Shown here: one piece after another, positions 34,677 to 64,000 of the stretch
How positions within the stretch are numbered: the first letter of the stretch is position 1
How the letters are laid out: the number at the start of each line of letters is the position of its first letter
Notes under the pieces: model-generated
What the model saw: only the letters and a program-made list of their open reading frames with translations
What the model was told of the DNA's origin: nothing
The model's database searches: none
Made by a program: the position numbers and the translations under genes
From: Phallusia mammillata
Taxonomy: Eukaryota
Direction: 5' to 3'
Assembly: GCA_965637545.1 (NCBI GenBank)
Contig: OZ281494.1
Location: 6,510,001 to 6,574,000 of the forward strand
DNA length: 64,000 nt

Positions 34677-36105
34677 ATGTTAAGTTTAAATAATTTAAAC
34701 GCTGTTAAGCACTGTATTATACAAACTAACACCATTATCAGTGGTAAGTCAACAGTTTTTTTTTAAAGAAGATTTGTCATCGTGATGCCTTTTTATTATT
34801 TTGGTGTAGTTTTCATCAGTTTTGCAACAAGTTATTGCCTCCGACTTCCCACTTCAAACAGCTCGGGTTATTTGGTTCACGCCACTGGTTATACAGGGCG
34901 CGATTGCCCATGGAACTTTGATTATGATTTACCAAACCGAACAAATCTCATGATGGTATTCAAGGTTTTTGAAGTCTGGTACCATCGGATGGGGTCCACA
35001 TTACTACAATTTCTACACACCAGATAATCCAGGTTTATATCTGTTACATTATCTTGCCAACAATAAAAAAATCTGTTATTTTGTTGTCGTAGGCAAAAAG
35101 TGGTGGCAATCGGGTCCATTCTGTCGCATTTACGTAAAGTCTGGTTCCAGCTTGCCGAACTGCAAACCTGGAGATAACAGACCAGAATTGTGTGGAAATG
35201 TCATACAAGAATCAATGCACTGGCCTCCCATGATTAAAACTGATTTTGCAAAATATTCTGCTGTAATGTCGTTTGATTTCATTGACTGTGAGGCAAACGT
35301 GTCGAATGTTGTCCCTGATATAGGTAACATTTTTCTTGTCCAGAGGAAGCTTGATTGATGTTTTATAACTGCCTGTCATAGACCTACTTATAAATCAATT
35401 GTTTTCTTTTAGAATTTTGTTTGTTTGGAGCTTTAGTTTAAATGTACTTACAAGGGCAAAATTGAACCTGAATTGATACATTTTGAGTACCTTTGATGTG
35501 AAAAATTTTCCCTTCAGTAACAACACTAGATCTTTTTATGTTTGCTTCAAGTGGTTGTAAAATCTGACGATACAACAACACACAATAACACATTGTTTAA
35601 ACCTTGGATAAACACAATTCAGATGACATCAACAACAACAATAACAACAGGAACATCACCCATTTCCGGTAATTTAGCTGATGTCACTGCAATTTATGGA
35701 AAAGCAAATTGTAAAAAAAAGATTTGTGTTTCAGCAGGTCAAACCGCTCCACCGCCGTCGGTATTTTTGTGGGTTTCTGTGGTTCTTGCTGTTTTACTGA
35801 TGATGGCATCTACGGCTATTGTGTATTTGCTGGTTAAAATTAGGTAATTAATTGAGAAGGGCTAACAAAACTTAAATAAGATAAAAATAGAAGGCAATTT
35901 TAATAAAATTCTCGATGCCAATTTTCACACGTTTTGAAGTCAATCTGGTTTGGTGTCATACAGAAAGATAAACGGATCTTCCCAAACCGAAGACAAATCA
36001 TCTACCAAATCGCAGGATAAAGAAATTGTGGTAAACGAACTTTACCACTCAAATAATCCAACGTTTGAAACTGAGACTGCGTACAATACTTTGTACAACC
36101 GATAA
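34677..36105 (+). CDS. R1: uncharacterised single-pass receptor, ectodomain subfamily A with type-I (ITSM-like) tail; one +1 frameshift. Exons 34677-34743, 34810-35032, 35093-35323, 35552-35668, 35735-35843, 35964-36105
   Basis: YCLRLPTSNSSG...CPW...PNRTNLMMVFKV / ...FYTPDNP; KWWQSGPFCRIY...YSAVMSFDFIDC; Thr-rich stalk; TM VFLWVSVVLAVLLMMASTAIVYLLV; tail KEIVVNELYHS...ETAYNTLYNR*. The T5 run at 34966-34970 has one T more than the paralog frame needs (real lesion or assembly error). Confidence 0.8.
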
Positions 36106-36971
36106 TCATGTAGCAAAGTCAAAAAGTAACATTTCGAGTTGCGTTTAGTGTAACTTGTTTTTGACATACATTTTACACCAAACTGTAGGTGACTTAGCAG
36201 ATGTCTAAGGCAAGAATACTTATTTTGTGATATTTTTCTTCAAAAATGATACCTGATTGTGCTATTGTTTGTTATATTTGTACGATTAAATTTTGGAATA
36301 AAATGAGATTAGTGTAATAAACGGACCCGATTGACATTTAAACAATCTTTGATTTGTTAAAGAGCAGCTCGAATCGTTTTTGTCTGAAGCATAACTGAGC
36401 AGTATGAGGTATTTAGGCAGCTAGATCGGGTTTAACATTACAACTAAGACTAAAATACATCGGGACGTAATGTTACGTAGAATACATTAGGTTGTCGGTT
36501 AAATAAAAAATCGATCCAAACGCCTCGATCCAAACCCTATACTGCACAGTAAGACCTAAATCAGCCCGAATGAGCTTGGACGGAACTAACGCAATACGTT
36601 GCATGTCTGTGTCCCAAACACTAACCGATCATATAACGTTTAACCCGATAATCCATGGCTATTATTAGAATTTGCATTGACAAAGCCTTTGTTATCTGCG
36701 GGCATACAAAATAGTACAGCTAATGATAAAGGGAATTTTATGTTTATTTATACATGTTTTTGAGGCGATTTACTGTGTTAAATTCTGTTAGTGATTTGAG
36801 TCATTGCGACGTAATAAGTGGCAAAAAAGTAACATGTATAGTTTCCTTAGTTTGGTTTTAGTTAAAATTTAAAGTCAAACAACATGGCACAAATGTAATC
36901 AACTTTAACACATATAAAAAAAAATATTTTGTTAAGTTATGATTTCAAGTCATTAAAAATGTTTCGAAAGA

Positions 36972-38966
36972 ATGTCGAGTTTCATAAATTTACACACTAT
37001 CCAACATTTTGTCAAAATGGGTTGCATCTTCTTAAGTGATAAGAAATTCTGGACTTCGTGCGTGGAAATAAAAAAAGTGAACAGGCTTAAATTTTTGCAT
37101 GAAATGCTTCTTCGGCTTTGCAACAAGCCTCCAACTTCCCTTTTCAAACAGGATTCATGATGCATGCTCCTGGATATGGTGGACATTTTTGCCAATAGAG
37201 GATTTATTACAATTCACCAAACCGAACAAATCTTATGATGATTTTCAAGGTTGTGAAATCCGATACTGTAGGTCAGAGGTGCAAGTCGGGCCGGGTTCGG
37301 GTTCGGGTTCGGGCTTAGGTATTTGTGAGAAAACAGGCTTAAAACGGGCCTGACTTTACGTTCCGCTTCCGCCAATGTTTTTTGTTTTTTTTAACAAAAA
37401 CACTCAGCTAAGTAACAATTCTCTGGCTTTGACCTAATGCCCACCCTCCTCTAAAACGTATTGTTTACCCTATTGTCTACTATTGTTCATTGTGTTTGTT
37501 GTCTTTCTCTTTTTTCTTTCTCATCCTTTGTTACAAGGCTTTCGTGGATAGGCCTGTCAATCAAAATTTCGGGCCTAAACGGGCTTTGCAAAAACGTTTT
37601 TTGTTCGGGCCGGGCTTCGGGCTTATACTTTCGGGTTCGGGCTCAGATTTCGGGCCCGCTTGCAACTCTGCTGTAGGTTATGTTGATAATCATTATAACT
37701 TTTGACAGACCAGGTAAGTTTTGGATAACTTTTAGCAGCAGGTGTCGAATAAACCAGCACGTTTGTCATTCTTCTTTAGAACACAAGTTCTATCAGGAGG
37801 CTCCTTGGTGCCGTATTTACGTCAAAGAAGGTTGAAATATGACCAAATGCAAAGTTAAAGATAGCAGAATAGAGCTATGTAAAAGTGACATACAAGGTGC
37901 TTTAAGCTGGCCACCCGAAATTACCACCTGGTTTAAACGATTCTCGGCTGTTATGTCTTATCAGTTTATTGATTGCGAATCAAATACTTTAATAGAAGCA
38001 TCTCAAAACCCAGGTAATTATAACCATTGGTAAACGAATTTGCATCACGAGAAGAATCAAACAAATATTTTGGCGGAATTTTCAGTGGTTGTTTCATCCA
38101 ATACATCACGACGTGACAATGGGACAGTTGCTGGACGGATAAACTTTACTCACCCAACTTACACCACTACAGTGACAGGAACAACGCCACTTTACGACGA
38201 CGTGTTGCGCTACAAAGGTATTGTGATAGTTTCATTAACATAGAATCGCTATTCACTAAACGGTCTTGCAGGGAAATGTATAATCCTTATTTACATACTC
38301 GTGATATACTTCACTAGAGAAACAAGGAAGTCGCTATTACGAATTATAAACCATATTTCCCATTTGCTATATTCGTGTTTTTAGAACCAGCTGCCTAGTT
38401 ATTGTATAACACACTCTGCGCACCTGTATAGCATGGAATCACTTGCAGTGAATAAAAAATAACTTGTTGACAGGTCAAACCACTGAGAAAACCTCCCCAT
38501 TTTTATGGGTCGTCGTGATCCTTGCAGTTTTGCTTCTCTTTGCATGTTGTGTCACCTTGGTTTTGCTTTTCAAAATCAGGTAAATATTTGACATGAAAAA
38601 CACCGTCAAATGTAACGTTGCAAACCTGATCAAAATCCTAGTGCAGTAAAACCTTAAACAGAATCGACTGATAAGAATATTTTTAACAGAATACATATTT
38701 TACAAATAAGCTTAGTGCAGTATAAGATTTCATGCAATATAAGTTAGAGTTGTTGTACTGAATCTGGATGTAAGTTTATCAGTTTGATGTATTAAATTTA
38801 TGTATTGCTTACACAGGAAATTGAAAACAACAAGAGTTCTTCCAACACGCTAACAGAAAACACTTCGGAACCGCAGTGTAGGGAAATTGTGGTCAACGAG
38901 CTTTACCATTCTACCAATCCATCATCTGAAAAGGAAGTTGTATACAATGCCTTTTACAAAACATAA
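36972..38966 (+). pseudogene. R2: pseudogene of the receptor family (ectodomain A, type-I tail)
   Basis: Exon-1 donor is G|ATAAG; frameshift after LPFSN; TAG where paralogs have Trp; hAT MITE inside exon 2; TGA in exon 3 near 37832; recognisable TM exon 38474-38579 and tail EIVVNELYHS...EVVYNAFYKT*. Confidence 0.88.
37274..37670. mobile_element. hAT MITE with internal (GGGTTC)n repeats, inserted in R2 coding exon 2
   Basis: TIR cagaggtgcaagtcgggcc / gggcccgcttgcaactctg; perfect TSD ctgtaggt; the reading frame ...KSDTVG|YVDNHYNF rejoins across it. A related end fragment lies at ~23945-23972. Confidence 0.93.
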
Positions 38967-39622
38967 TGGCCTTTTACAATAACCTAAACCAACCATATGT
39001 TTGATTGTAGCATAATTCAATTCTACACAAGCATTTTGTGTGTTTTCGTCAATGTGTGAACTGTGTTGAGATTTACAATGCCTGTATTCTTAACATAATT
39101 ACGTTAAACGCTGTACACTTCAACTGAGAAACACGGTCTAAACGCGAAACTTTGGGTGTCTTGCAACTAAGTTGATCTTACGCACCAAATCGCTCAAATC
39201 ACGTTTTAACACTGTGACATATAAACGACAATAAATTTGCATTCATTAAGCTTCGGTGGAAAATGCCCCAGATTCCGCTGCAGTACTTCAAGTGGTTATA
39301 CTGATAAGTAGTTTGCATTTACTTGTGAGGTTTCGACAAGAAAGAAATAAAAGTTATATCATCGCATTTTTTTCGGTTTGTCATTCGAGTCAACAAGACC
39401 GTGAAAAATGTGTGAATAGAACTTTATATACTGCAATATAGTTTTACTAGTCGCCGTTTAGGCAATCTCAGAAAATAGAGTGGTGATAAAAGTTTTACGC
39501 ATGCAAGTGAAAAAAAATTGTACACTATACCACAAGATACTTATTCATACGTAGTAATTTACTGAAGCTAGTAATGTTTGACATTTTTTGTTTGACCTTA
39601 TTTTTTAGTGCACAGCTAAACA

Positions 39623-41739
39623 ATGTTATGTAAAACCGCTTTAAACACTATCCAGCATTTTGCTGCGACGATTTGCGTCATTGCAAGTGGTAAGTTATTA
39701 TTTGTATAACATATCGTTGAACAGTTAAAACCTCTCTACTTTAAATTTGTGTTTCAAGTTTCGTTCAGTCCCACGTCAGGTTATTGCATCCGACTTCCAA
39801 CTTCAAACAGTTCCGGATATTTTTCACACGCTTCCGATTATTCAACAGTGCAATGCAATTGGGTTTTTGATTACAATCCACCCAACCGAACAAATCTTAT
39901 GATGGTGTTTAAGGTTTTAACATCTACCAGTGTAGGATCGATTCTTAATCACTACAACTTCTATACACCCGATAACCCAGGTACGTCATTACCACCTGAA
40001 GTATCTTACAAAATAAATAAATAAATAAATAAATATTGTCTCGTCTTAGGCATGAAGTGGTGGTTATCAGGTCCTTTCTGTCGTATTTATGTAAAGTCTG
40101 GTTCCAATTTGACAAACTGCAAACCTGGAGTTACGAGACTAAACGTGTGTAAAAATGTCATACAAGAATCTGTGATGTGGCCTCCCATAATTAAAACCGA
40201 TTTTATACAATATTCTGCTGTGATGTCATACCAGTTTATTGATTGTGAAGCAATAGAAAAACAAAAACAAATCAGCACAACGCCTAACCCAGGTACAATA
40301 CTTATTTCATATGCAAGATTCAAAGCATTATTGCGGAAAACTGTGATTTGTTGATTAATATAACTGTAGACAAACCTGTTATTAATTTAGAAATAAAAAA
40401 ATTGCGGCCTAGAGTGTGGTTTAATGATTCTGTAGCAATGTAATTTAAACCATTGATTTGTCCATTGATTAAAACATACTTCATTCCTCTTGAAGTCTCG
40501 GAGTCGAGCACATCTCAGTACGATAAGCAAACGAGTAGTGGTTTGCTAAACAACTCGATTCAGGCAACAACAATGTCAGGAAAAACGTCATCTCCCGTTG
40601 GCACAGCTTGCGCTTCAGGTATTGACACTCTGTTTAGTTTCAATCAAAACAATGCTTGTTTTTGCTAGTAAATTTCAGACTGAAAATTGCTGTGTTGATA
40701 AAGCAAATTACAAACACTTTGATTCTTGCCATATTTTCCTTATATGTATACACCACAAAACAGGTATTACAGTTATTAGGACGCGGTGGGGTGTATTTTT
40801 TCGAACCCAGAAAGCTCTCGGGGACAGATCCCGATCAAGTTTTTTATGTCTGTACATGGTTTAGGCGAGCCGGATCATTCGGCCAAGTTCCTGCCCAACA
40901 CGATGCGCTGTTTTTTCCTTCTTTTCACGGGCCCAGGACTTTTTTTTTTTTTTCACGGGGTTCGAACCCAGGACTCCCCCGGGGACGAATCCCGATCAGG
41001 TTTTTTATGTCTGTATATGGGTCAGGCGCGCCAGACCGTTCGGCCAAGCTCCTGCCCTTCACGGGCCCAGGACAATCTGCAACGACATCTAGCGTAATAA
41101 TAAAATCAGACATTAAAGTTAATACTTGTCCGAAATACTGGCAATGACAAACATGTGTTTTAACTTAATTTTTACCAAGTTTTATACACCAACCACAAAC
41201 TAACACAAACCTTACACTGATACCAGTTACTAATTATTGCAGGTCTTTCCACAACTGATACCATCATTATAGCATCAGCTGCTGGTGTTCTTGCAGTATT
41301 TTGTTTACTGCTCATCCTGCTGTTGTGGCAAAACTGCAAAAACAAACGCAAAACAAGGTTAGCTATTTGTACGAGTTTAAATAAAAAGCTTTCTAAATTG
41401 CACATTTAAATCCCCAATGATTCGCAAAGTTTTAAACCTCAGTTTAAAACCAGAAATATGTACAGAAACGGCTCCATGATTTCACTTTCGACGCAAAACG
41501 AACATCTACAAGGCCAACCACCTCCTAAACAAGCTTACACAAATTTTCCACCAGCACCGCCGAATCACGGTAAAAGTTTGTTTATTCTGTGACGGTGTTA
41601 TCAGTGTTGATTAGTTTCATGTTTTGTAGATTCTGTGGACGTGAATGCAGTTTCAAAACCTAACGACGACGGTTATGTTGTTCCAATTCAACGCTCTGAT
41701 CCAGTTTACGAAGATGTAAACGGAATTTATCGTAATTGA
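39623..41739 (+). CDS. R3: intact receptor, ectodomain A with type-II tail; exons 39623-39689, 39759-39980, 40050-40292, 40496-40618, 41243-41357, 41430-41569, 41630-41739
   Basis: Continuous spliced ORF: signal, YCIRLPTSNSSG...QCNW...PNRTNLMMVFKV...FYTPDNP, KWWLSGPFC...FIDC, Ser/Thr stalk, TM IIIASAAGVLAVFCLLLILLLW, tail ...NDDGYVVPIQRSDPVYEDVNGIYRN*. The exon-6 acceptor is my best in-frame choice. Confidence 0.85.
40776..41095. repeat. GC-rich intronic insertion in R3 with an internal ~160-bp direct duplication, probably a TE relic
   Basis: gggac..atcccgatca.gttttttatgtctgta.atgg...ttcggccaag.tcctgccc at ~40820 and ~40982; ttcacgggcccaggac occurs twice; not seen in the homologous R4 intron. 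Confidence 0.6.
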
Positions 41740-42435
41740 ACTGTTTACTTCATCAAAAAGTTTTCTCACATTGGATATTCAAACACAATATTGCAATTTC
41801 TCAACCTCGCATTTCTAAAACTTTTTTTTCTTAGTTCCTAATTTTTCAAGCTCTGTTTAATAGAAGTTAAAATCGCATACAAAGGCATACTCCTACAAAA
41901 GACGATTTAGGTGAAAAAATTTTTATCCGTGAGTTTGCACTTGTGTTTACTACCGTCATCTTACCTGAACTGTTTCTATGTTCAAAACCTGTTGTGACGA
42001 CTTACGTTTATTACAGAAGTCAAATCACAATTCTTTTTGAAAAGACTTACAATAGGGAAAACTGGATGACATCAAAACCGTCTAATGTACCTGGTGCAAA
42101 ATCTAACGCAGTGTGTAATGATATCGTATTTTGTTTACAAGTAATGCAATCATTGTAACAACCGAAATACTTAAATGCGTTGAACAAACATCGAATTGTC
42201 AATCACGAAAGTTGCTGACTCAACGTCTAACAAATTATCTCCTGTTAGATTCTAGCAGCTAGAAGATTACAGTGCAGAACGAGCAGCAAAGTTTAAGTTT
42301 ATCTCGCAAACAAGTCAATCTACTAAGGGCAAAATTTTTATGTAGAAAGAAAAGATATAATTTGTTAATCAAACATGCATACTCAGCTTTTTCAATTAGA
42401 TCATTAACACGTTGTTCGAAACGTTGTTAACATAG

Positions 42436-42576
42436 GAAATCGCAAAGTACGAACACGTTAACAGCAAGCACTTTGGAACTGCAGAGTATAGGGAAAGTGT
42501 GGTCAACGGGTTTTTTCAGTCTACCAATCGATCATCTGAAAAGGAAGTTGTGTACAATGCCGTGTATGAAGCATGA
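42436..42576 (+). pseudogene. orphan type-I tail exon, a duplicate of the R2 tail carried along in the R3/R4 tandem duplication
   Basis: Encodes ...ESVVNGFFQSTNRSSEKEVVYNAVYEA*. The downstream flank 42660-42930 matches 39060-39350. No ectodomain or TM exon precedes it. Confidence 0.8.
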
Positions 42577-43145
42577 GGTTTCAGTAACCTACGCAATCCA
42601 TATGAACGAAGCATACTTAAATTATATAAGAGCATTTATCGTGGTACAATCTTCATTGTTTTAACTATTAATTAATTACCCATGCCAAGTTGTTTTATAA
42701 ACATAATTATGTTTAACTTTAAGCTCTACACTTCAATTGAGAAACCGGGCCTAAAAAGAAAACTTTTGTAATTAAGATGTTTTGCAACTAAGATGATGTT
42801 ACGCACCGACTTGCTCAAATCACGTTTTAAAACTGTGACGTATGAACGGCAATAAATAATTTGCATTTACTGTGTATGGGTAAATAAAGCCTCACCATAC
42901 TTTCAGTGGTTGTATTGCAAATTAGTTTACATTTACTTATGAGGGTTAGACAAACAACAGATTGACGATGAGCCTTTGTGATGTTGTGTTTCGTTTTGTT
43001 GTTTAAATTATTAAGGGAATTACTGCGTTATCACTTTTATTGTTTGGTCAGACGAAGTTAGTGCACAATAAGGCTTGACTTAATTATGTGTTGTTTCACT
43101 AAACATTCACACTTTTACATGTACTTTCTAGTACACAGATAAACA

Positions 43146-45754
43146 ATGTTGTGTAAATTCAGCATGAACACAGCTCAACGTTTTGTTGCAATGATTAGTG
43201 TCATTACAAGTGGTAAGTTAAGTCAAGAATTTAGGGCATTTCGGGGCGATGTTTTATGTTTACTACTTTTCTTCTTTCTATTTGTAATTCAGTGTCGCTT
43301 GGCCTTGCATCAGGTTATTGCATCGAACTTCCAACTTCGAACAGTTCAGGAAATTTCGTCCACGCCTCTGATGTTCGAACAGAGCAATGCAACTGGATTT
43401 TTAATTACAATCCTCCCAACAGAACTAACCTTATGATGGTGTTTAAGGTTTTGCAATCGGGTACTGTTGGTCTGTTGCATCAGCAGTACGACTTCTATAC
43501 ACCAGATAATCCAGGTACGTGTAAACCAGTGGTTCTCAACCGCCTGTCCACTGATCTGTGCCGGTTTGCGTCAACTTTTCTGCCGGTCAGCCAAATATAC
43601 TACAAATTTATATCTCAATTGAAAATGCAAGATGTTAAAGGCCATTTGTCCATTAATTAAAAAATATAACATCCATATTTAAGGTGATTTAGAATGTTCA
43701 CGTTCAAAAATTTGCAGCATGTCGTACGTCACAAACAACTTGTCGTACGTCACAATGCTGTAAGGGTGGTGCCAAAAAGTTTAAAAGTGCAAAAGACACC
43801 AGCAAACTTCTCATTACATCTTTTAAGTTGCATATTGTTGTCGTAGTTACATTTTGGGGTGATTTTGACAGTCCACCGGTCCGCAAAATTTGTTTTGAAA
43901 GTTTACCGGTCCGCAAACTTTAAATGTTGAGAACCGCTGGTGTAAACCACTTCAGGAACCTTGTCGACATAAACACGTGATGAATATTTTCTTACCGTAG
44001 GCAGAAAGTGGTGGCTGAAAGGTCCATTCTGTCGTATTTATGCAAAATCTGGTTCCAGCTTGAAGAACTGCAAACCTGGAGATAAGAGACAAGACTTGTG
44101 TCGAAATGTTATACAAGATTCTGTGATGTGGCCTCCGATATTAAAAACCAGCTTTGCATCATATTCTGCTGTGATGTCATACCAGTTTATTGATTGTGAA
44201 GCAAACGTGACGGAGAACAGAACCAGCACGAAAATGACCATGGGTAAGAGATTTATTTCAACAGCATTAAGATTCGCCATACTTCGCACACATACAGGTG
44301 GCTTACACCTCGCATCTGCGCACCTTTTTATCATTCCACGTGACTCAAGTGTATATGAACAGGTGTAACTGATGTGGACCTACATATCACTGATAATGGC
44401 ATGAGCACTTGCCAAAATATTTGAAAAATAAAGCATGTCGATTTTTAGAGCCGTTATTTCACCATTCACCATTAAGCATCAAGATTTGTTTGGTAGTTTC
44501 ATATTTTATCCTCGTGCAAGGCCTGAATGAGTTATACTCACAATAGGTCCGCTGCCGAGCTGCCGGTTTATTGCAATCACTTTTTTCGAGCAAGAATTCC
44601 ACCGGGTGGAGGCAATGCTGCTCTAGTTTCTTGTTCAGAGAAAACAAACTACCTTGATTGGATTAGAACCAACAACCTTGTGAACAAATAGCGGAACCAC
44701 TTAGCCACCGTGATTTGCGTGATTATTATTGTGACTAAAACAAACCGTGAATTAATTGTGCAAAATTTTTCGTGAGAGGTTAATGATATGGACGTGGTCA
44801 GAAAGACTTACACAACATTTTTTCTCAATTTAATCCTGTTTAACATATTTTGTTTGTGCAGATATCTTGATACCAAACACATCCAACATCACCAACTCAG
44901 TGCAAACAGGAACAACGTCACTTCCTGGAAGCGCAGCTTGCGTCTCAGGTATTGACACTTTATTTTCGGACTTGACTCATTGTGATAGCTGCTGTGTTGA
45001 TAAAGCAAGTTACAAACACTATTGGTTGCAAAATTTTTCTGGAACGAACACCACGTAACCAAACAAATATTGAAATGACAAACTACCTAACGTCCCCAAT
45101 GTTGCAGACCACAAACATGAGCTTTTACGTTGTATGTTACAAGCGAATCTAATAATTAAACTACAATTAACACAAATATTACACTATCATTACCACAGTA
45201 ATTAATAATTTCAGGTCTTACTACAATTGACACCATCGTTGTAGCATCAGCTGCTGCTGTATTTGGGGTATTTTGTCTGCTGCTCATCATATTGTTGTGG
45301 CGAAACTGCAAAAACAAAAATAGATCCAGGTTTGTAGTCACACCGTTACCCAACTATTAAGAAAACAAAACCTCTCAGCATATGTGCAATATAGTGACTG
45401 GGACATGTGTAACATTTCATGCGCATTACAAGGTAGCGTCTACTAACGTAATCGTTTTATTCCGGTAAACACAGCTTTAAAACCATCAGTTTGTCCAGAA
45501 ACAACTCAATAATCTCACTTTCAACACAAAACGATCATCTACAAGAGCAACATATTCCAGAACCAGCTCCGTTGAAACACGGTAAAGCAATGTTTATTAT
45601 GTGACGGTGTCAAAAGTGATGGTGAGTTTTATGATTTGTAGATTTTGTTGATGTGGATGTTGCTTCAAAACCTAACGACGACCACGGATATCTTGTTCCA
45701 ATCAAACAATCTGTTCCACTTTACGAAGATTTAAATGGATTGTCTCGTACTTAA
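43146..45754 (+). CDS. R4: intact receptor, ectodomain A with type-II tail; exons 43146-43212, 43293-43514, 44001-44243, 44862-44948, 45215-45329, 45475-45581, 45642-45754
   Basis: Spliced ORF co-linear with R3; TM IVVASAAAVFGVFCLLLIILLW; tail ...NDDHGYLVPIKQSVPLYEDLNGLSRT*. Confidence 0.88.
43527..43939. mobile_element. hAT (Charlie/Buster-like) MITE in R4 intron 2
   Basis: TIR CAGTGGTTCTCAAC / GTTGAGAACCGCTG; perfect TSD gtgtaaac. Confidence 0.93.
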
Positions 45755-54015: not shown

Positions 54016-55857
54016 TTATACGTTAACTGCAGGACGGCTGTACAAATCGTTGTAAACAGTTTTTCGCTCCGTCGAGGGTCCAGTGAGTGGGTTAGATGCG
54101 TTTCCTGGAGTTTGTTGGTTAGGGGGAATGAATAAAGTATCGGTCGCTGCATGAAATGGAAACGGGTGTCCTATGCTTTTTCTTTCCTTTCTACATAATT
54201 AGAGTAATAAAAGACTTCAGTGCTTAGAAAAATCTTATTCTAACGCAATATACATATACTTGTGAATGTATATAGTCTGCAGTAAAGAAAAAAATGCGAG
54301 ATAATAATTGACATAATTTCATACCTTTAAGTTAATTTTATTTATTGTAGTTATTCAGCCAAAAACTTACTTAAATTTCCAAAACATGAACATTAATCCT
54401 GAGCATGCAAGTGTGAGCAGAACAGTTAGAATTACCAGCAAGCACAGTAGGACAGTTGCGTTTGAAGGTGCACTTGGATCTGTGAAATAAAATGATGCAT
54501 TATTGTCGAGCATAATCAGCCAATGACACCAGTTCTGTACCAAACGTTTGTCGCCATGATTCGGTTAAATGAACGCATTTGAGTGGAATCGCTAACTTAA
54601 ACAAGGCCCAATGAGGACAGATGATTGCTACAGTTTTAGGGGGTCGGGGTATTCGTGTCGAGTTTGGTTAAGGATTAACTTGAATTACAAGTTTTCCGAG
54701 TGTGATTTTAATATTGCGACAACTTCATAAATTTTCGGACAGACCAAGGGGTTCACTTCACTTTTACTTCAGGTTCGATCACCAATTATACGAATCACCT
54801 AATTTGGTTGCTTCACTATGTTATTTGACTGGCACCAGCCTTAACTTACCTTCTGCAAATTTTTCACATGACAAACTGGTGTATTTAAAATCAGGTGTGG
54901 TTTCAGTAGTTGGTGTTTTACTGGTTGATGTTGGTGAAAAAACGCTTTTGCAACGGACTGGAATTTTGGTGGTCCCTGGAATCGCTGTGCTTGCTACCAC
55001 AGATGTTGAAATATATTTAGCAGTATGAAAGCAAAATAGTTAGAATCCAAATATTTTGTTTCAGATAAACAAGTTGTAATGCAAACCTATTTGAGAAAGG
55101 TATACACAAAGCATAAATTCTTGTTTCAACAATAACATAGATTACTTTCGCAAAACATCAAATATCATTTTTAAGAAAATTCATGGTCACCTTGAGTTCG
55201 AGTTGTACTGCTGATGGCTTGGGTGTCGCAATCAAATATTTGGTATGACATCACAGCCAATGAATGATAAAACACAGTTGTTAAATTCGGTGACCAACTG
55301 GACAGAGTTTTAATTCCTTCTCTACATAAGTTACTTTTGGTGAGAACATCTTTGCATAATTCTTTGTTGGAGCCTGTTTTCATGTAGACGCGACACCAAG
55401 GACTGTTTGGCGCCGAATACTTTGCTTCTATTTTAGCAAAAACGTAGTTTATTTTCACAACGGCAAAAACAAAACAACTTACCTGGTTGACCAGGCAACC
55501 AAAAATTGAACTCGGATTTTAAGTCGAAAACGACGTTTTCCAAAACTTTGAAAACCAGCAAGCGATTTGAACTGTTGTTCTGTTGAGTGTCATTTAGCTG
55601 CCAGTCACACTTGCTCACTGTATTTTTGCCATATCCGGTGCTGTGCACCAGAATGCCTGAACTATCGGAATTAGGAAAAGGAATGCATAAGCTTGTTGCC
55701 AGTGAAAACAAACCTAAACAAAACTGGCTGAGATGCATTTTTTATGTCTTTCATATTATAATTATATCAAAATGCTATTAATGTAGGCTAATTAACTTAT
55801 AATCTGCCTTTACTTACCGGCAATTGCTGTTAACAAAAGCAGTTTTAATGCCGACAT
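54016..55857 (-). CDS. R7: intact receptor, ectodomain B with type-I tail; exons 55857-55818, 55713-55483, 55427-55191, 54993-54850, 54479-54371, 54190-54016
   Basis: MSALKLLLLTAIAGLFSLATSLCIPFPNSDSSG...KCDW...NRLLVFKVL...FNFWLPGQP; SPWCRVYMKTG...AVMSYQIFDC; stalk; TM VLLCLLVILTVLLTLACSGLMFMFW; single tail exon ...ERKTVYNDLYSRPAVNV*. Confidence 0.85.
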
Positions 55858-55929
55858 TTTTCACAGTACTTCCTGTAAAACTTATGCTCTTAATATCAAG
55901 TCGCACACAGTTGATGAGCTTAAACGTGA

Positions 55930-56040
55930 TATATCGCAGGACTTAGCCGCCACATTCTGCTATTGGTTCGTAAGTTGAGTTAGCGTGTCATCCATAATTT
56001 ATTTGCATAAAGGAGGAAGGACAGTAAGTCAAGATATTTC
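55930..56040 (-). promoter_or_regulatory. conserved upstream block shared by R7 and R8 (second copy ~63430-63545), putative promoter
   Basis: cattctgctattggttcg(t/c)aagtt (contains a CCAAT box) and at(t/a)tgcataaa(g/a)gaggaaggacagt are conserved in both copies; R7 has a perfect octamer ATTTGCAT at 56001-56008. Function is inferred only. Confidence 0.4.
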
Positions 56041-58182
56041 TAACTAAGCTATTCTTGAATGACCTTCTCCGCTTTAAAGTATGAGTTTTGCTGTTGCAAT
56101 CCAGTTTAATTTTTTTTAATCTATTTATTTACATTTTGGCATTAGTTAAGCAACAGGGCAATTCCACTAGGATGAAACTCCGATTAGACTAATTAAGGAA
56201 CTGTGAACGTTATTTTATTTGGTTCCGAAATGCTTTATTGACTCTTTACACGTACAAATTATGTTGTAAAAAATACGCATCGTTAACGGTAACAAAATAA
56301 TTTAAACTCAAACGAAATGGCACATGTTAAAAAAACACGAAATCACACATGTTATGTTTTCAAAAATATACAAATACAATGACATTTTACGTTACGCAAT
56401 GTGGAAATAAGAACCCAATTCTTGTGGTGCATAAAAAGAACTGTTGCATGCAACCTAAAATAAAACAGGTCTAAAACTGTTTTACATATGTTTCTTGCAA
56501 CAAATTATATGTTTTGTAACATTTTTGAAAGCAATTGATATTTGATGACTATTCTGGAGGTGGTTCATCGTAAACGTGGTTTTTAGGAACTTGTCCTTGC
56601 ATTGTAACAGAACAATCGTTATGGTCGTTTTGTGATGGAATTTCCGGTTCGACTCTTCCTGTTAAATGAATCAGATGAAAAAATGGTAAAATACTGTAGT
56701 GTTTGCAACATTTTTATGCCTGTAGAATTTAATAATAACATCAAAAAATGTTGCAACATGGAAGCACACATTTTGCCATAAAAAGTCAATGTTTCGTGGG
56801 ACACTTGCCGTACTCTCTATGAACCGCGTTACTACTCAAAAAGCTCTACCTTATTATTTTAAGGGATCATTACTTATTTGTACCATGATTTGTTGAAAAA
56901 GACACGTAATATAAAGATTGGCGTAACCAGCGATTCATGTCCTCAATAACGGCGTTTCAAAACAAATTTTCTCATCAACAAAGAGTTAAATTTTACCCAT
57001 TGGCTTAGGTGCGCCACAAAACGTAAATCACAACTGACATAGGGGTCCTGAAGTAGGAATGAACCTCACCTTGTTGTAAGGCAGAAGGATAAGGCACGTA
57101 AGCAGCAGAGAAAATAGACTGATGACTTTGTCGTACACTGTTTCTTTTCGACAGCTGGACCATTGGTGGGTTTCTAAACACAAAATGTAAAGCCAAAGCA
57201 ACAAACTTTCAAACCATTCAGTGAATTGTTCTAAGTAATAAACGAGATTTAAACGACATTAATAACAAACCTTACTCTTCGGGTCTGACGCCGATTTTGA
57301 AGCAAAGATACGATAAGCAGTATGCAGAATATGGTCAGCAAAATAGTCGATGTTACAACAACTATTATTTCAGTCAGTGAAAAAACTGAAAATAAAAATT
57401 CGGCATTAAAATACATTTTTTTCGTTTTGCACACCAAAACATGGTAGTTAAAATAGAAAAGTTAACAAAAAACTCAGTTATTCAAATATTTTATATATTT
57501 TTTCTTTATTCGAGTCTTGGCATAAACTACTTTGCGCATCAGTAGAAATTCATTGTGATGCTAGAGCTAACATATGTATACTAAAGTATTATTTGTCAAT
57601 AATAATCAAAGTATACATGTAACATCAAAAGAAGAGATGTCGTCTAAACTTGTTGGCAACATTGTAGATCTAGTTTTCTTTACACTTTATTTGATTTCAC
57701 TTCCTTACAAGATTGACAGACTGTGACGACAGAGTTATGACGGACATTTTTGTAAGGCGTCGAATCTACACTCTACGCTCTACCTGTTGTTGTTGTTGTT
57801 GTTGCTGTTGTGGTTGTCTGTTTGGCTTTCGTTGCGGTACAAATCAAAGGTGTTTTAGTCGTTTCGGTGGTTTCATTTTTTGTCAACCCATTTTCCAAAC
57901 ACACTACAATTCCAGATATAAGTTACTGTCAGTTATTTTGTAATGGGATGAAAATTTCATACCAATAACAGTAATAAAACTTGCAGAGCCTTGCACAAAT
58001 ATTTTACTTAGCACAATTGGTAACATTTAGTTCTGCATTGCATTGTTTTCTAATTTCGTGTAACAGTGAAAATTTGAAATGACGTTTCGTAACTTACTTT
58101 CTTTGAATTGTCTACATGACAAACTGGTGCATTCAGAATACGATGTGATTTTACTCGATGGTGATTTACTGCTAGATGTAGG

Positions 58183-58569
58183 TGTAGAATTCAAGCAGTG
58201 TGCTAATTCTACCTTTCAGTCTCTTGACTGGCAGAATAAGACAGCCGGTTTCAGATGCACTTTATTTTCAGTGATTTAAAACGGATTTTTGACCACCTTA
58301 TTTAAATAGAATCAAAACGTTACAATTACAAACAGTCCAAACAATTTACCTTATATAACATAAAATTATCCACCTCAGCAAAGTTTAATACAACACCACA
58401 GACTTAGATACTGCTGAAACAATGACTGGGCTACACGTGCAGAGACAAGAAACCGAGAAAGCAGGACGTACATAAAGTTGGCAGTTATGTCGTCACAATG
58501 AACGTATAGGTCACGGGTTACAACGGCGGGAAAAGTTTTTGCTATTGGGGAGCGTTACTGTCCGTTACA
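58183..58569 (-). repeat. 3' LTR (387 bp)
   Basis: Direct repeat of 62069-62455; I count 5 mismatches. Confidence 0.95.
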
Positions 58570-58790
58570 TACCGGCCCCTAAATAACGAACGTGGAGACA
58601 AAGTTATTTACACACAACAACAGGAGGACAGAAACGAAACACAAGAAAGTTACGCTGCCTCAAGTAAGCACAGCTTGCGAATATCGCGCGTATATACAGC
58701 TCTCGCGGTGCGAACGCGAACACTTCTGACAGCTCCTTCGCTATCAGGGCACACCACCACCACAATGCCTTTTGGTCAGGCACCTGGGGT

Positions 58791-61700
58791 TCATCTTGTA
58801 CGCGACCAAAACCAGGTCACCGGCCCCAAAGCTCTTCGTTGGTCGTACCCATAAAATTGGCAGGTAGTCGCGAAGCCACCTCTTCCAAAACGTATCTGCC
58901 AGCCACCCAACCGTACGCAGCGTTCCCCGGTAGTCGTCAGCAGTGGCGAACTTGTCCGGGGTAAGGAAACGTCCAGTTCTGGAACAATCATTCTCCTTAT
59001 CTTAACAGCCGTTACCGCAGCGCCTTCCAGATACGGCAATGCGACAGGCCTTACATGGGCCTCACCAGATTTTCCAAACATCAATGAATAGAGAATATAC
59101 CTGACTGAATCAACAAAGCAAAGATAACACACCGCACCGAACCCGGTCTTGCAAGCATTGCAAAAACAGAGCAGCTGTGTTGCAACGAAGACTACGTTGG
59201 GAGGTTTGTAACAACGCAGTGTCAAAAGATTCCAATGCTCGATCGCACTTTCGGAAAGTGGGTTGTCCCAATCCAGTTGCTGGTTGCACAGACTATGCAT
59301 TAGCTGTTTTATAGAAAGCAGAAATGGCTGGATAAATCCAAGCGGGTCGGAGACCTTACTAATCATCGAAAACACTACGACAAGGCCTTTGGTACGGTAA
59401 GACCCTTGTAGCAACTTGTCGTTTAATAATGTTCCATCGTAGGAAGCGGAACAATCGAAAAGAGTTCGAAATTTGCCACCCGTCGCGTGGTGTGGTATAT
59501 TCCGTGTTTGTTTTGTACATTTCAAACTACCTGAAAGGATTCCTGGAGCAAATCCCTGTCTCAAGTAATCCTGTATCTTTTCCCAGTACTTTCCAAGCGG
59601 TTCGGTATACTTGTGGAAGCGACGCTTTAAGTGTGACAGGCGTCGTTTTGCCAAGCTACTGTCATAGGACAGAACCGGGACGGGCAATTTCCAAGGCAAA
59701 ATCTGGTAATGTCCGTTCACTCTAGTGACACTGTTTTCTGTATTTGAAAGAACTCGTTTGTGTTTAAGTGAAAGTCCAAGGTCACTTGAACCTCTATCTT
59801 GAAAGTCAATACTGTATAACTGATCCAACTGATCAGGTAGTTTTGTGTTAGCGTGTATGTAATTTACACTCGTGTGTCTGATGTCATGTTTTCTTTCGGG
59901 GCCGAACAAACACCAGCCCAAACCAGTGCGAATAGCAACAGGGTCGCCACGAGAGCCACGTACAGCCTCGTGTTGCTCATGAGCCTCGTAAACATCGGCT
60001 GCTATGAGCAAGTCCACATCTGGACAATTTATTACAGAGAATTTGAGATTTCGAATATGCGGATACCTCTTAATATCATCAACAGTAGGAATGCTGCCTT
60101 GTAGGTTGGGTAACTTGGGGACGACCCTTAAACTTTTCAACATAAAACAAGCGCCATCGTTCAGGCCTTGTACGGACAGCGAAACTTTGCGACTGCGCAA
60201 TGTTTGTGTTCCGTTTACGGTAGTAATTGTCAAGTTGTCTTCCACACCGCTTAGCCCTAGTTTCTTGGCCAATGCTGCAGAGCACAATGACGTGTCTGAT
60301 CCGTCGTCAAGAAAGGCATGCGTGAAATGGGGTTTACAATTCCTATCCAAAACAGTAACTGGCACGACCTTAAGTCGCACAGAATGAGTCTGCAGTGTCG
60401 CAGCGGATATTCCTGGCAAACCGGCCCCGTCAACTTCCGTTGGATCGCTAGAAGATTGTACAGATAAGCGCGAAGAGTGCGCCCAATGCAATAGCGTGTG
60501 ATGCCTTTTCCCGCAGGAGTCTACACGGCATACATATTTGGACAAACATTTGTCCGCACAATGCTCGGGACGAAAACAATTGAAGCACAGTTTGTTATGA
60601 CGCACTAGCTCAAAACGTTCTTTTACTGGTCGGCTCCTAAAGGCCTCACATTTCCACAAAAAATGTGACGACCCGCATTCGGGGCATGTAGGCGTCCGTC
60701 CCGGTGAGTCGTAATTCACAAAAGACTCTTCATCTGACACTACCGAGTATGTAGTTGTGACTCGATCTGGGAACTTGCCTTTGTTGGTAACTTGTCCTTG
60801 CGACTCGCATTCCTCGTCGGAAATAAACCTCATCAATGGCGATAGAGTGTCCTCTACCAACAATTCCAAAAGATCCAACAACGCTTGAAAGGTCACTGGT
60901 TGATTTCGCAAACGAAGTTCCGAGGATCTAGTGATGAATCGTCTGATTGCAGTATGCGGCAAGCGCTGTACAACAGCCTCAATATTTTGAGGCAGATCAA
61001 GCGTGTATTTACAGTCCCACTGACTGAATATGTAACTTTCTGCAGCTTGTGCACGAAACTGTCGTAAGCCCTTGAAGTCGCTATCCTTCAATTGCGGGCG
61101 TTGTGTCAATCGGTCCATGTGTGCTCTTACAACAAGGTCTAATCTCCCATGTCTCCTCTGGAGTATATCTAATGCTTCCTTGTAACCTAAATCGGGGGGC
61201 ATGCTTTTGCATTCCAAAATGTTGGTCAGAGCATCTTCAGTGCAAAATTCACAGAGATATCCCAGCTTCTCGGCATCAGACAAATACGCCTTATTTATCT
61301 GCCGATCGAAGTCGTTCATAAACTTGTGATAGTCAAGAGGATCGCCGTCGTATTTCATTAAATGCAGTTTCGGTAAATTGAAACCTTGTTTTATAGTTTC
61401 TGCAATTACATACCAATTCTCGGTAGTCGCTGGTGGACCATGAGGGTGAGGTTTTATTGTTGCATTTAGATGTTTTTCTTCAAATGTGCTGGCCCCAGTG
61501 GCCTCTGCGCTGGTGGCAACCACTGGACCTTCTGCCTTAGTTCGGAGGGTTCGAGAAGGCCCGACAGGAACCTGTGACTTGGCTGGTGCAAGTGGTTCGT
61601 CTGTCGGGTTCACATTCGTCTTCTGTTTGTCGTCCCCATGCGAAGGCTCACACGAGTCAAACTCTCTTAAAGTTTCAGCAGCGAATTCTGCCAATTCCTT

Positions 61701-62024
61701 CTCTTGTCGGGCTTTATCAAGCTCGAGTTCCATTTCCAAATTTTGTTCTCTGGCGTTCAGTTCCATTTCCAAATTTTGTTTTCTGGCTTTCAGTTCCATT
61801 TCCAACACTTTGGACTTAATGGCGCATCGACGTTTTAGTTGTTCCATCCTTAACGTTGCAGCTTCGGCCTCACGGCCAGAACGCGAGCTGGCAGTACTTT
61901 TGACACTTAGCACAGAACCTTTAACGGACGGGTCACCGCCGTTAGTTTGTTCATGCCTGACATGATCAATCACGTCAAATAGCTCTTGTGATGTGCTGGG
62001 GATATGTTCTTCCTCGCTTGACAT
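58791..62024 (-). CDS. BEL/Pao Gag-protease polyprotein fused to fragmentary Pol
   Basis: ~1077-codon ORF: coiled-coil N-terminus, LPKLHLMKYDGDPLDYHKF (BEL Gag), CPECGSSHFLWKC / CFNCFRPEHCADKC / CRVDSCGKRHHTLLH, AFLDDGSDTSL. No YxDD RT core and no integrase HHCC/DDE region is visible. Confidence 0.85.
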   Translation of the reverse strand: MSSEEEHIPSTSQELFDVIDHVRHEQTNGGDPSVKGSVLSVKSTASSRSGREAEAATLRMEQLKRRCAIKSKVLEMELKARKQNLEMELNAREQNLEMELELDKARQEKELAEFAAETLREFDSCEPSHGDDKQKTNVNPTDEPLAPAKSQVPVGPSRTLRTKAEGPVVATSAEATGASTFEEKHLNATIKPHPHGPPATTENWYVIAETIKQGFNLPKLHLMKYDGDPLDYHKFMNDFDRQINKAYLSDAEKLGYLCEFCTEDALTNILECKSMPPDLGYKEALDILQRRHGRLDLVVRAHMDRLTQRPQLKDSDFKGLRQFRAQAAESYIFSQWDCKYTLDLPQNIEAVVQRLPHTAIRRFITRSSELRLRNQPVTFQALLDLLELLVEDTLSPLMRFISDEECESQGQVTNKGKFPDRVTTTYSVVSDEESFVNYDSPGRTPTCPECGSSHFLWKCEAFRSRPVKERFELVRHNKLCFNCFRPEHCADKCLSKYVCRVDSCGKRHHTLLHWAHSSRLSVQSSSDPTEVDGAGLPGISAATLQTHSVRLKVVPVTVLDRNCKPHFTHAFLDDGSDTSLCSAALAKKLGLSGVEDNLTITTVNGTQTLRSRKVSLSVQGLNDGACFMLKSLRVVPKLPNLQGSIPTVDDIKRYPHIRNLKFSVINCPDVDLLIAADVYEAHEQHEAVRGSRGDPVAIRTGLGWCLFGPERKHDIRHTSVNYIHANTKLPDQLDQLYSIDFQDRGSSDLGLSLKHKRVLSNTENSVTRVNGHYQILPWKLPVPVLSYDSSLAKRRLSHLKRRFHKYTEPLGKYWEKIQDYLRQGFAPGILSGSLKCTKQTRNIPHHATGGKFRTLFDCSASYDGTLLNDKLLQGSYRTKGLVVVFSMISKVSDPLGFIQPFLLSIKQLMHSLCNQQLDWDNPLSESAIEHWNLLTLRCYKPPNVVFVATQLLCFCNACKTGFGAVCYLCFVDSVRYILYSLMFGKSGEAHVRPVALPYLEGAAVTAVKIRRMIVPELDVSLPRTSSPLLTTTGERCVRLGGWQIRFGRGGFATTCQFYGYDQRRALGPVTWFWSRTR

Positions 62025-62068
62025 CTTTCTCAAGACATTTGAGAAACCAAAGAAGCCGTTTTAAATGA

Positions 62069-62455
62069 TGTAGAATTCAAGCAGTGTGCTAATTCTACCT
62101 TTCAGTCTCTTGACTGGCAGAATAAGACAGCCGGTTTCAGATGCACTTTATTTTCAGTGATTTAAAACGGATTTTTGACCACCATTTTTAAATAGAATCA
62201 AAACGTCACAATTACAAACAGTCCAGACAATTTACCTTATATAACATAAAATTATCCACCTCAGCAAAGTTTAATACAACACCACAGACTTAGATACTGC
62301 TGAAACAATGACTGGGCTACACGTGCAGAGACAAGAAACCGAGAAAGCAGGACGCACATAAAGTTGGCAGTTATGTCGTCACAATGAACGTATAGGTCAC
62401 GGGTTACAACGGCGGGAAAAGTTTTTGCTATTGGGGAGCGTTACTGTCCGTTACA
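62069..62455 (-). repeat. 5' LTR (387 bp)
   Basis: Direct repeat of 58183-58569, followed on the minus strand by a short spacer and a TGGT PBS-like start. Confidence 0.95.
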
Positions 62456-64000
62456 GTAGGTGATAAAACGTTTTTGCAACGGAGTGGAAATTTTGTGGTC
62501 GCCAGGATCGCTGTGCCTGCAGCCACGGATGTGGAAATTATTTAGTTGTATAAGTTGTATAAAAGTAAAATAGTTAGAATCCAAATATATACGTTCAGAT
62601 AAATGTTTTAATGCTAGCCTATTTGAGAAGGGTTGACAAAAATCATGGATTTTGCTTGTTTCAATAATAACATTGATAACTGTTGCAAAACATCAAATAC
62701 ACTTTTTGTCACCTTGAGTTTGAGTTGTAGTGTTGCTGGGTGGGGTGTCGCAATCAAATATTTGGTATGACATCACAGTCAATGAATGATAAAACACAGT
62801 TGTTAAATTTGGTGGCCAAGAAAAAAACAGTTTGTATGCTTTCCCCACATAAGTTATTTTTGTTAAGAACATCTTTGCATAATTCCTTGTCAAAACCTGT
62901 TTTCATGTAGACGCGACGCCAAAGACTGTTGGACGCCGAATACTTTCCTTCCATTACAACAAAAATGTAGTTAAATATTTTAACCAAAAGCAAACCACTT
63001 ACCTGGTTGACCAGGCAACCAAAAGTTGAACTCTGAATTTAAGTCGAAAACGACACTTTCCAGAACTTTGAAAAGCAGCAAGCGATTTGGACTGTTGTAG
63101 TGAGTGTCATTTAGCTGCCAGACACACTTGCTCACTTTATTTTTGCCATACCCCGTGCTGTGAACCAGAATGCCTGAACTATCGGAATTAGGGAAAGGAA
63201 TGCAAACGCTTGCTGCCAGCAAAATCAAACCTAGAAAAAAAAAATTTGTCGTTTAGTTTATAATTATATCAAAGTACTGTTTATGTGATAAAGATCTTGT
63301 ATAACTTACCGGCAAATCCTGTCATTAAATGCAGTTTCGTTGTCGACATATTTCACCACACGAACACGTATTTTATGCTCGTTACTAATCTAACTAATAC
63401 CGACAATAAGCTCGCATAATCGATAACCTACTACGTGACATATTGCAGGTTTATTCGCCGCATTCTGCTATTGGTTCGCAAGTTAAACGTGTCAACCATA
63501 ATTCATATGCATAAAAGAGGAAGGACAGTGATTCAAGATATTTTGAACTAATCTACATTTGTTTGACCTTTCTTCGATTAAAATCTTATTTTACGGCTAA
63601 TTCAGTCCAATAAAGTCATTTCATCCATATTTTATTTTTGATTCATATTTTTATTTTGGAGAGTAGATCGTTGCGTAAAACAACACAGGAATGTTACTGA
63701 ATAGAAAAAATAATTCAGAGGACTAGCAACAATGTAAATTCTTTGTTCGCTTGGAATTGTTTTATTGTTTCTTTACTCGTACTTTTTTCTGTTGTATAAA
63801 ACACGTATCGGGAAAGATAGTGGTCAAAAAGCAAATAATAAAATTCGAAGTTACATGTTAGGTACGGCTGCAGTAAATGAACACAACAAAACCTGATTGC
63901 AGACCTAGGAATTTCGAAAGCTGACAAAACAATGCAAAACGTCGGGATTAGAAAACGTGATCAAGTATGAGCCCAATTGTCGTTGGACTTCACACAAAGT

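Follow-up and report, generated by a model that had tools for sequence, protein, structure and literature searches.

How does a single gene cluster come to carry related ectodomains on two different kinds of tail, and what might those tails do? The question is raised by a tandem array of predicted receptor genes in the ascidian Phallusia mammillata. The array lies in a 64-kb stretch of genomic DNA (GenBank assembly GCA_965637545.1, contig OZ281494.1, positions 6,510,001 to 6,574,000 of the forward strand), called the window here, whose G+C content is ~36% and which contains no runs of N. It occupies the window from 32.9 kb onward. Searches by tblastn and self-blastn resolved it into eight units of spliced genes, numbered R1 to R8 by position, together with relics. 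The units consist of paralogous exons rather than chance similarities, as self-blastn E values reach down to 1e-88, and the span 34677-63349 is bounded by the ATGs of R1 and R8. The reading that we favor, to which we give a probability of about 0.6, is that the array is a birth-and-death tandem family of type I membrane receptors whose modules have been swapped and whose tails are predicted to signal through tyrosines.

The modules fall into two ectodomain clades and two cassettes. Ectodomain A belongs to R1 to R5, with motifs at 34.8, 39.8, 43.3, and 46.8 kb and a degraded fifth copy at 37.1-38.0 kb. Ectodomain B belongs to R6 to R8, with motifs at 49.3 kb on the plus strand and at 55.5 and 63.1 kb on the minus strand. 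Cassette I consists of a transmembrane (TM) exon and one tail exon, and cassette II of a TM exon and two tail exons. The type I TM pattern V.L.VLL is present at 35779, 38515, and 54415 only, and type I tails are located at 36076, 38937, 42547, and 54040. Type II TM and tail exons were assigned to R3, R4, R6, and R8. The peptide motifs by which a first-pass annotation of this sequence had defined the modules were all found in their places. The eight units are:

34677-36105, plus strand: R1, ectodomain A with cassette I; exons 34677-34743, 34810-35032, 35093-35323, 35552-35668, 35738-35843 (type I TM), and 35940-36105 (tail, TAYNTLY).
37108-38963, plus strand: R2, ectodomain A with cassette I, pseudogene; type I TM exon 38474-38579, tail exon 38796-38963 (VVYNAFY).
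39623-41739, plus strand: R3, ectodomain A with cassette II, intact, 331 amino acids, seven GT-AG exons at 39623-39689, 39759-39980, 40050-40292, 40496-40618, 41243-41357 (type II TM), 41454-41569, and 41630-41739.
43146-45754, plus strand: R4, ectodomain A with cassette II, intact, 309 amino acids, seven exons at 43146-43212, 43293-43514, 44001-44243, 44862-44948, 45215-45329 (type II TM), 45499-45581, and 45642-45754.
46648-47748, plus strand: R5, truncated A-type pseudogene with the stalk exon present.
49129-51387, plus strand: R6, ectodomain B with cassette II; exons 49129-49198, 49257-49475, 49655-49891, 50212-50385, 50652-50759 (type II TM), 50898-50980, and 51284-51387 (DYVNI).
54016-55857, minus strand: R7, ectodomain B with cassette I, intact, 310 amino acids, six exons at 55818-55857, 55483-55713, 55191-55424, 54850-54993, 54371-54479 (type I TM), and 54016-54190 (tail, TVYNDLY).
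56549-63349, minus strand: R8, pseudogene with an R7-like 5' half (promoter to stalk exon) and an R6-like 3' half; stalk 2, type II TM exon 57271-57385, tail exons 57070-57173 and 56549-56658 (VYDEP).

Did ectodomains and cassettes share one history? Separate trees indicate that they did not. The ectodomain tree resolved clade A as (R1,R2,R5,(R3,R4)) and clade B as (R6,(R7,R8)), with 98-100% support for the named splits. The TM exon tree instead separated (R1,R2,R7) from (R3,R4,inv1,inv2,(R6,R8)), where inv1 and inv2 are inverted relics described below; the split between types I and II received 100/100 support and the pairing of R6 with R8 100/98. In approximately unbiased (AU) tests, the ectodomain data rejected a type I clade of R1, R2, and R7 (p 3e-66) as well as a grouping of R6 with R8 (p 0.0018), and the TM data rejected the ectodomain-B clade of R6, R7, and R8 (p 0.011). 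The proposal of exon shuffling made in the first-pass annotation is thus borne out by strongly incongruent trees, and likewise by a visible breakpoint in R8 and by compatible exon phases.

Pairwise comparison of the modules gave the same partition. In these comparisons, Smith-Waterman scores were expressed as z values against composition-preserving shuffles. The R7 TM scored z 3.4-5.5 against R1 or R2, and the R7 tail scored z 5.1-6.9 against R1, R2, and an orphan type I tail exon, whereas both R7 modules scored z <=2.5 against type II. The type II TMs of R3, R4, R6, and R8 resembled one another at z 5-15, and their tails more weakly at z 0.7-5.0. What the type II tails have in common is an RN start of the first tail exon (IIa), a D[SFY]V[DN][VI] start of the second (IIb), and their exon phases. 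The scheme of A and B ectodomains and I and II cassettes is therefore upheld by trees and z scores alike, except that the VVYNAVY exon, which had been given to R5, is not part of R5.

All four combinations of ectodomain and cassette are present as sequence, as had been claimed, and since two ectodomain states occur with two cassette states in every pairing, at least one recombination is required. As intact genes of the window haplotype, only two combinations remain, A with II (R3 and R4) and B with I (R7). Related ectodomains do sit on differing tails within the one cluster: R7 with cassette I next to R8 with cassette II, and clade A with cassette I in R1 and R2 and with cassette II in R3 and R4. 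In each such A or B pair, one partner is damaged in the window haplotype.

The junction itself can be seen in R8. R7 and R8 align at 77% identity over 1185 bp (88% in exons), a stretch that takes in the promoter, both ectodomain exons, and the introns and reaches into the stalk exon. Across a retrotransposon that interrupts the R8 stalk exon, the alignment goes on for 95 bp and then ends. Beyond it, stalk 2, the TM exon, and tail exon IIa of R8 match R6 at 71-76%. Together with the trees, this pattern supports recombinational shuffling of ectodomains and cassettes. An alternative, which we hold to be possible yet less probable than the favored reading, is homogenization of the ectodomains. In other words, R8 would have begun as an R6-like gene and been converted by an R7-like donor, the cassettes being old and stable and the ectodomains the part that spread. 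Consistent with this, the 5' half of R8 is closer to R7 (synonymous divergence, dS, 0.23 in addition to the exon identity given above) than its 3' half is to R6 (72-76%), and both TM types apparently predate the split between A and B, as both occur in another ascidian, Clavelina lepadiformis. However, the similarity of R7 and R8 extends over 1.2 kb, promoter and introns included, and stops at a single point, which an unequal crossover fits equally well. Conversion and crossover yield an identical product, and one haplotype is compatible with either a moved tail or an overwritten ectodomain.

How could such exchanges yield readable genes? The answer would lie in the exon phases. A signal-peptide exon of 40-81 nt ends in phase 1. 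The ectodomain (~150 residues with six Cys) is encoded by two exons of ~220 and ~240 nt, each phase 1-1, and the stalk by one Ser/Thr/Pro-rich exon, also phase 1-1. The TM exon runs from phase 1 to phase 2 in both types (106-109 nt in type I, 115 nt in type II), and tails start in phase 2, in type I as one terminal exon and in type II as two exons, the first of which runs from phase 2 to phase 1. Because the phases of both cassettes are equal, either cassette joins any ectodomain in frame. In the model that we propose, unequal crossing-over or gene conversion in the stalk and TM introns can join any ectodomain to either cassette without disturbing the frame, and R8, with its R7-like 5' and R6-like 3' parts, shows together with the incongruent trees that such joining has taken place. 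Duplication, inversion, indels, and a retrotransposon would then erode copies, so that each haplotype would keep a subset of working genes (here R3, R4, and R7; elsewhere R6).

One duplication can be followed closely. R4 and an orphan type I tail exon form a tandem duplicate of R3 and the R2 tail, at an offset of 3.5-4.0 kb (38844-42400 versus 42452-46000). By this alignment, R3 and R4 are products of a 3.5-4.0 kb tandem duplication whose 5' breakpoint lies inside the last intron of R2, leaving an orphan tail exon ahead of R4. The orphan is the VVYNAVY exon at 42436-42573. It lies between the stop of R3 (41739) and the start of R4 (43146); no type I TM exon adjoins it, and no phase-2 donor would be in phase with it. 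Its earlier assignment as a type I module of R5 cannot stand, as R5 has neither a TM nor a tail. The same exon was also considered as an alternative last exon of R3 and rejected, for its acceptor phase gives the wrong frame and a type I TM exon is absent nearby.

R3, R4, and R7 are complete open reading frames (ORFs) with GT-AG introns throughout, and that of R3 runs without an internal stop. The other five of the eight copies (R1, R2, R5, R6, and R8) are damaged in the window haplotype, and R2, R5, and R8 are dead. In R1, an extra T in the T-run of exon 2 near 34968 causes a 1-bp frameshift between MMVFKV and FYTPDNP, and the exon 2 donor is weak (GTTTAT). R2 has stops in ectodomain exons 2 and 3, a microsatellite insertion, and an out-of-phase tail acceptor. 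In R5, the acceptor AG of exon 2 is lost and a TAA (47111-47113) replaces the Tyr codon of CRIYVK in exon 3; its 3' half is missing, with no TM or tail on its own strand. The TM exon of R6 is 108 instead of 115 nt long owing to a 7-bp deletion, which brings a stop after 241 amino acids, ahead of the membrane span. In R8, exon 3 is frameshifted and carries a Cys>Arg change, and the stalk exon is interrupted by an LTR (long terminal repeat) retrotransposon. The relics and the inserted element are:

32888-33133, plus strand: R0, lone frame-shifted fragment of an A-type ectodomain exon 3 (tblastn E 4e-9, a two-frame match; blastn matches to exon 3 of R3, R4, and R5).
42436-42573, plus strand: orphan tail exon of type I (VVYNAVY), sharing 76% identity with the tail exon of R2.
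48181-48284 and 48545-48622, minus strand: inverted degenerate type II TM exon relics (inv1 and inv2).
58183-62456, minus strand: BEL/Pao-type LTR retrotransposon in the R8 stalk exon, 4.3 kb; LTRs of at least 300 nt at 58183 and 62069, 98% identical; a 1089-amino-acid ORF at 58794-62060.

The retrotransposon ORF contains a Pao peptidase A17 domain and DUF1759 by Pfam. It has no reverse transcriptase or integrase match in Pfam, and for that reason the element is probably internally deleted. A megablast of the ORF against phage sequences gave no match. Separately, the intron between the stalk and TM exons of R3 holds an internally repeated element (40640-41150) with two similar open frames, FFMSV(H/Y)G.G.PD.SAK(F/L)LP, and Gly/Ser-coding microsatellite DNA similar to it disrupts exon 2 of R2 at ~37270-37330.

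Reads from other sequencing runs bear on how much of this damage is fixed. The read comparison covered window positions 50100-56099. Runs X1 and X2 are genomic DNA, as shown by flat depth over introns and intergenic DNA and by contigs colinear with the genome. X1 shares the R6 deletion allele with the window. A contig of X2, spanning 50307-52630 and thus leaving the 5' exons of R6 outside its range, has seven extra bases (TTTGTAG) behind 50674 within the R6 TM exon. With this insertion, the exon is 115 nt long and reads VFPSTGAIFVVTATIVLAIFCVLL..., residue by residue in parallel with the R8 exon, and R6 with the X2 insertion and the three exonic substitutions of X2 forms a 333-amino-acid ORF. 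It appears that an intact R6 allele exists in another haplotype. The R6 of the window looks like a segregating deletion allele, which would be null, or soluble if expressed. The same reads gave a further observation on R7: over its ectodomain exons (window 55100-55700), summed contig depth in both DNA runs reached 4-8 times the baseline of the flanks, and several variant contigs were present. The excess points to additional R7-like ectodomains beyond the window, either copies or alleles that are at least 90% alike.

Are the combinations, then, mere relics? One could regard the array as a gene graveyard, in which the combinations serve no present function and the tyrosine motifs drift. The damage to five of eight copies, the three orphan exons, and the lack of RNA from array genes in the RNA-labelled runs over 50100-56099 all fit such a picture. 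We nevertheless consider it very unlikely, because R3, R4, and R7 retain complete ORFs with consensus splice sites and R6 is intact in another haplotype. Furthermore, the ratio of nonsynonymous to synonymous divergence (dN/dS) between R3 and R4 is below 1 in every module (0.28-0.63 across ectodomain, TM, and tail exons), and the C-terminal tail motif is conserved as far as Clavelina.

What kind of protein is the ectodomain? Pfam returned no match for any exon type of the window or for the Clavelina homologues, even at E values of up to 1-10. A profile hidden Markov model of exon 3, searched against 1.84e9 representative proteins, gave 11 hits (best E 2.4e-10), and its full-length matches were only Clavelina lepadiformis proteins of 286 and 346 amino acids (E 2e-5 to 5e-5). 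These relatives, LOC143461689 (XP_076815627) and LOC143462528 with their tandem paralogues, are uncharacterised; the UniRef twin of LOC143461689 carries the automatic name 'CUB domain-containing protein'. Exon 2 of the window and of Clavelina matched at E 1.9e-4 in hhalign. A word-indexed protein search with the Clavelina member P0005 returned only itself and a fragment. The Clavelina homologues share with the array the two-exon ectodomain, the Cys pattern, a mucin stalk, a single TM, both TM types, and a tandem arrangement. They differ in that identity is only ~20-25%, in that their type I tails are longer and multi-tyrosine, and in that a type II-like member has a one-exon tail. In the Clavelina cluster (OX392444.1, ~14.72 Mb), at least six tandem paralogues of the family are found, most with a canonical C-terminal ITIM (immunoreceptor tyrosine-based inhibitory motif), and LOC143461689 has YHNM instead.

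A structural model was made of the Clavelina ectodomain, not of a window protein, from a 23-row alignment that included exon 3 rows of the window. This AlphaFold2 model is all beta (predicted local distance difference test score, pLDDT, 79.8; predicted template-modeling score, pTM, 0.75). Shape searches with Foldseek against the PDB, AlphaFold Database (AFDB) Swiss-Prot, and AFDB clusters, and against the ESM Atlas, found nothing below E 1e-3 or above a template-modeling score of 0.5; the matches were generic jelly-rolls only (cupin, GOLD, and CUB). Likewise, sequence-profile searches of the PDB with ectodomain alignments found no CUB chain or other meaningful match. Exon 2 does have a CUB-like pattern, C-x22-26-C-x-W (C-x22-C-N-W in R3), and exon 3 has four further Cys, unlike CUB. 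The predicted fold is thus a six-cysteine jelly-roll sandwich that is CUB-like at best. Filing it as a CUB domain (PF00431) was rejected, as Pfam gives no match and structural matches stay below 0.5. Literature searches found no paper describing the receptor family, and the best explanation is that it is lineage-restricted.

The tails can be compared in more depth. All type I tails have just one element in common, [VT]xYNx[LVF]Y at the C terminus: TAYNTLY in R1, VVYNAFY in R2, VVYNAVY in the orphan exon, and TVYNDLY in R7. Written more broadly as [VT]xY[NQ]x[ILV], it recurs in Clavelina. Most Clavelina paralogues end in N[VI][LI]YQP[ILV], a canonical ITIM (VLYQPI, VIYQPL, or ILYQPV) at the equivalent C-terminal position and often with a second Tyr at +4. 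Judged from these alignments, the conservation in Clavelina is the best argument that the C-terminal tyrosine site may be functional. Clavelina TMs of the P0007 type also carry the type I core IVLSVLL, with z up to 8.4. The type II tails hold different motifs, namely DDGYVVP-x7-YEDV and YTN in R3, HGYLVP-x7-YEDL in R4, DYVNI in R6, and VYDEP in R8; the corresponding peptides are GYVVPIQRSDPVYEDV, DYVNI, and VYDEP. In Clavelina P0005, a TM resembling type II (z 5.8-9.2) is followed by a single tail exon. As a full type II orthologue P0005 was rejected in part, its TM being similar but its tail not divided into two exons.

How might these tails act? In the proposed model, they would signal through tyrosine phosphorylation. 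Cassette I would offer one ITIM- or ITSM-like (immunoreceptor tyrosine-based switch motif) C-terminal site, [VT]xY[NQ]x[ILV]Y, docking phosphatases of the SHP/SHIP type. Cassette II would offer several sites (YxxP-x7-YED[VL], YxN, and YDEP) docking kinases or adaptors. Related ectodomains would thereby be coupled to different, possibly opposite, outputs in the manner of CEACAM1 and CEACAM3. SHP-1, SHIP, Syk, Src kinases, Grb2, and Crk are expressed in the ampullae of the ascidian Botryllus (PMC12065747). The pairing of inhibitory with activating receptors that the first-pass annotation had put forward is, by analogy, a plausible reading.

Several results weigh against the favored reading and above all against its signaling part. 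A strict ITIM, [ILVS]xYxx[ILV], is present in the window tails only as VVYNAV in the orphan exon and as a juxtamembrane VSYRKI in the damaged R1. The R7 motif TVYNDL, with Thr at -2 and Leu at +3, falls outside both the strict ITIM and the ITSM (TxYxx[VI]); R1 has TAYNTL and R2 has VVYNAF. No canonical ITAM (immunoreceptor tyrosine-based activation motif, YxxL/I-x6-8-YxxL/I) or hemITAM (DEDGYxxL) was found in the array tails: YxxP-x7-YED[VL] of R3 and R4 has Pro at +3 of its first half, and DDGYVVP has Pro where a hemITAM needs Leu. The membrane spans of type II contain no Lys, Arg, Asp, or Glu. Type II tails of A and B genes share little besides the TM (tail z 0.7-5.0, as above), and the one-exon tail of P0005 leaves the Clavelina comparison only suggestive of an old cassette II. 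Furthermore, the window haplotype lacks two intact genes of the same ectodomain clade with differing cassettes. Over 50100-56099, the RNA-labelled runs X3 and X7 covered only a repeat at 52.6-53.35 kb and no array gene. Finally, nothing connects the receptor family to immune cells.

Some of these points fit a different function. The array could encode adhesion or scaffold receptors, that is, CUB-like single-pass proteins whose tails are alternative docking platforms for Src-family kinases and Crk, Nck, or Grb2, as in CDCP1 or DCBLD2, and do not carry opposing signals. The type II motifs are YxxP, YED[VL], YxN, and YDEP rather than ITAM or hemITAM, the neighbors of the array are adhesion G-protein-coupled receptors (GPCRs) and glutathione S-transferases (GSTs) rather than immune genes, and the RNA-labelled runs show only the repeat. 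CDCP1, DCBLD1/2, and the neuropilins indeed combine an extracellular CUB-like beta-sandwich with intracellular YxxP or Src-type motifs. However, they are conserved single genes with several domains, and CDCP1 and the DCBLD genes in particular are single-copy and of another architecture. Hallmarks of immune or recognition families include rapid birth and death, null alleles, the swapping of modules, and conservation of an ITIM-like site at the C terminus, all of which point away from such a role, and neither Pfam nor PDB-sequence profiles tie the family to CUB. On balance, an adhesion or scaffold role seems rather unlikely.

Receptors with paired or modular tyrosine motifs are known on immunoglobulin (Ig) and C-type lectin scaffolds, and in ascidians they have so far been represented by the Ig-type fester and FcoR of Botryllus. 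Like the array, KIR, LILR, Ly49, SIRP, and Siglec-5/14 genes are clustered, copy-number-variable, and pseudogene-rich, with similar ectodomains on differing tails. Their activating members differ in that the tail is short and DAP12 or FcR gamma is recruited by a charged residue in the TM, whereas array type II has an uncharged TM and tyrosines of its own. Among the systems compared, the CEACAM1/CEACAM3 pair appears closest in logic. As described in two CEACAM papers, near-identical ligand-binding domains are coupled either to an ITIM/ITSM tail or to a multi-exon tail that itself holds an ITAM-like motif, and recombination in a tandem cluster both generates the pairs and keeps them alike amid birth-and-death turnover (PMC5112662, PMC2832619). 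The CEACAM ectodomain is Ig V-type and its motifs are canonical and functionally tested, whereas the array has a non-Ig jelly-roll and near-consensus motifs known from sequence. The fester/FcoR genes of Botryllus schlosseri are likewise ascidian multigene receptors; their tails bear ITIM, hemITAM, or core Yxx[ILV] motifs, which are exchanged among otherwise similar receptors, and their gene content is haplotype-specific (PMC12065747, PMC12582321). The FcoR proteins, however, are Ig-sushi-Ig, 520-610 amino acids long, and encoded at the fuhc locus, and their motifs are swapped by alternative splicing and allelic variation (PMC12065747, PMC12582321). No sequence relation to the array family was seen.

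A bolder form of the favored reading can be stated. Two interchangeable cassettes, one ITIM-type and one multi-tyrosine and ITAM-like, may have been kept since before the ascidian orders diverged and been reshuffled onto a CUB-like ectodomain, neither Ig nor lectin, that evolves fast, while null and presence/absence alleles segregate. In the sister group of vertebrates, the family may then be an independently invented, natural killer (NK)-receptor-like paired system built on a third fold, with a role in self/non-self or pathogen recognition. We regard this extended version as doubtful and give it a little less credence than the adhesion or scaffold role.

If true, a second, unrelated ascidian family would mean that clusters of receptors with exchangeable cassettes arise repeatedly and do not depend on the Ig fold. 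The array combines an unannotated jelly-roll domain with a visible breakpoint and compatible phases; one null allele apparently segregates, and the tail motif is conserved in a second ascidian. It would also offer a compact locus, ~30 kb with three or four working genes, for studying ITIM-like/ITAM-like pairing in the closest invertebrate relatives of vertebrates. Even without opposing tails, the array is a clean case of exon shuffling and birth-and-death evolution.

The remaining observations concern the surroundings of the array genes. The repeat at window 52600-53350 is of very high copy number, with a contig depth of 1e5-6e5 against a baseline of ~270. It is probably a transcribed transposable element, because it is the only portion of the read-covered stretch present in the RNA-labelled runs. 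Directly upstream of the array lie two adhesion-GPCR paralogues (17808-19700 and 25318-31610) with EGF-Ca exons, a GPCR proteolysis site (GPS) motif CKCNHLTLFTVLLAV, and a secretin-type seven-transmembrane domain (7tm_2). Further upstream, at window 98-12000 on the minus strand, is a GST tandem array of at least four genes or gene pieces, recognized by GST_N matches and by repeated KLYHS..PPSR..ALD exons.

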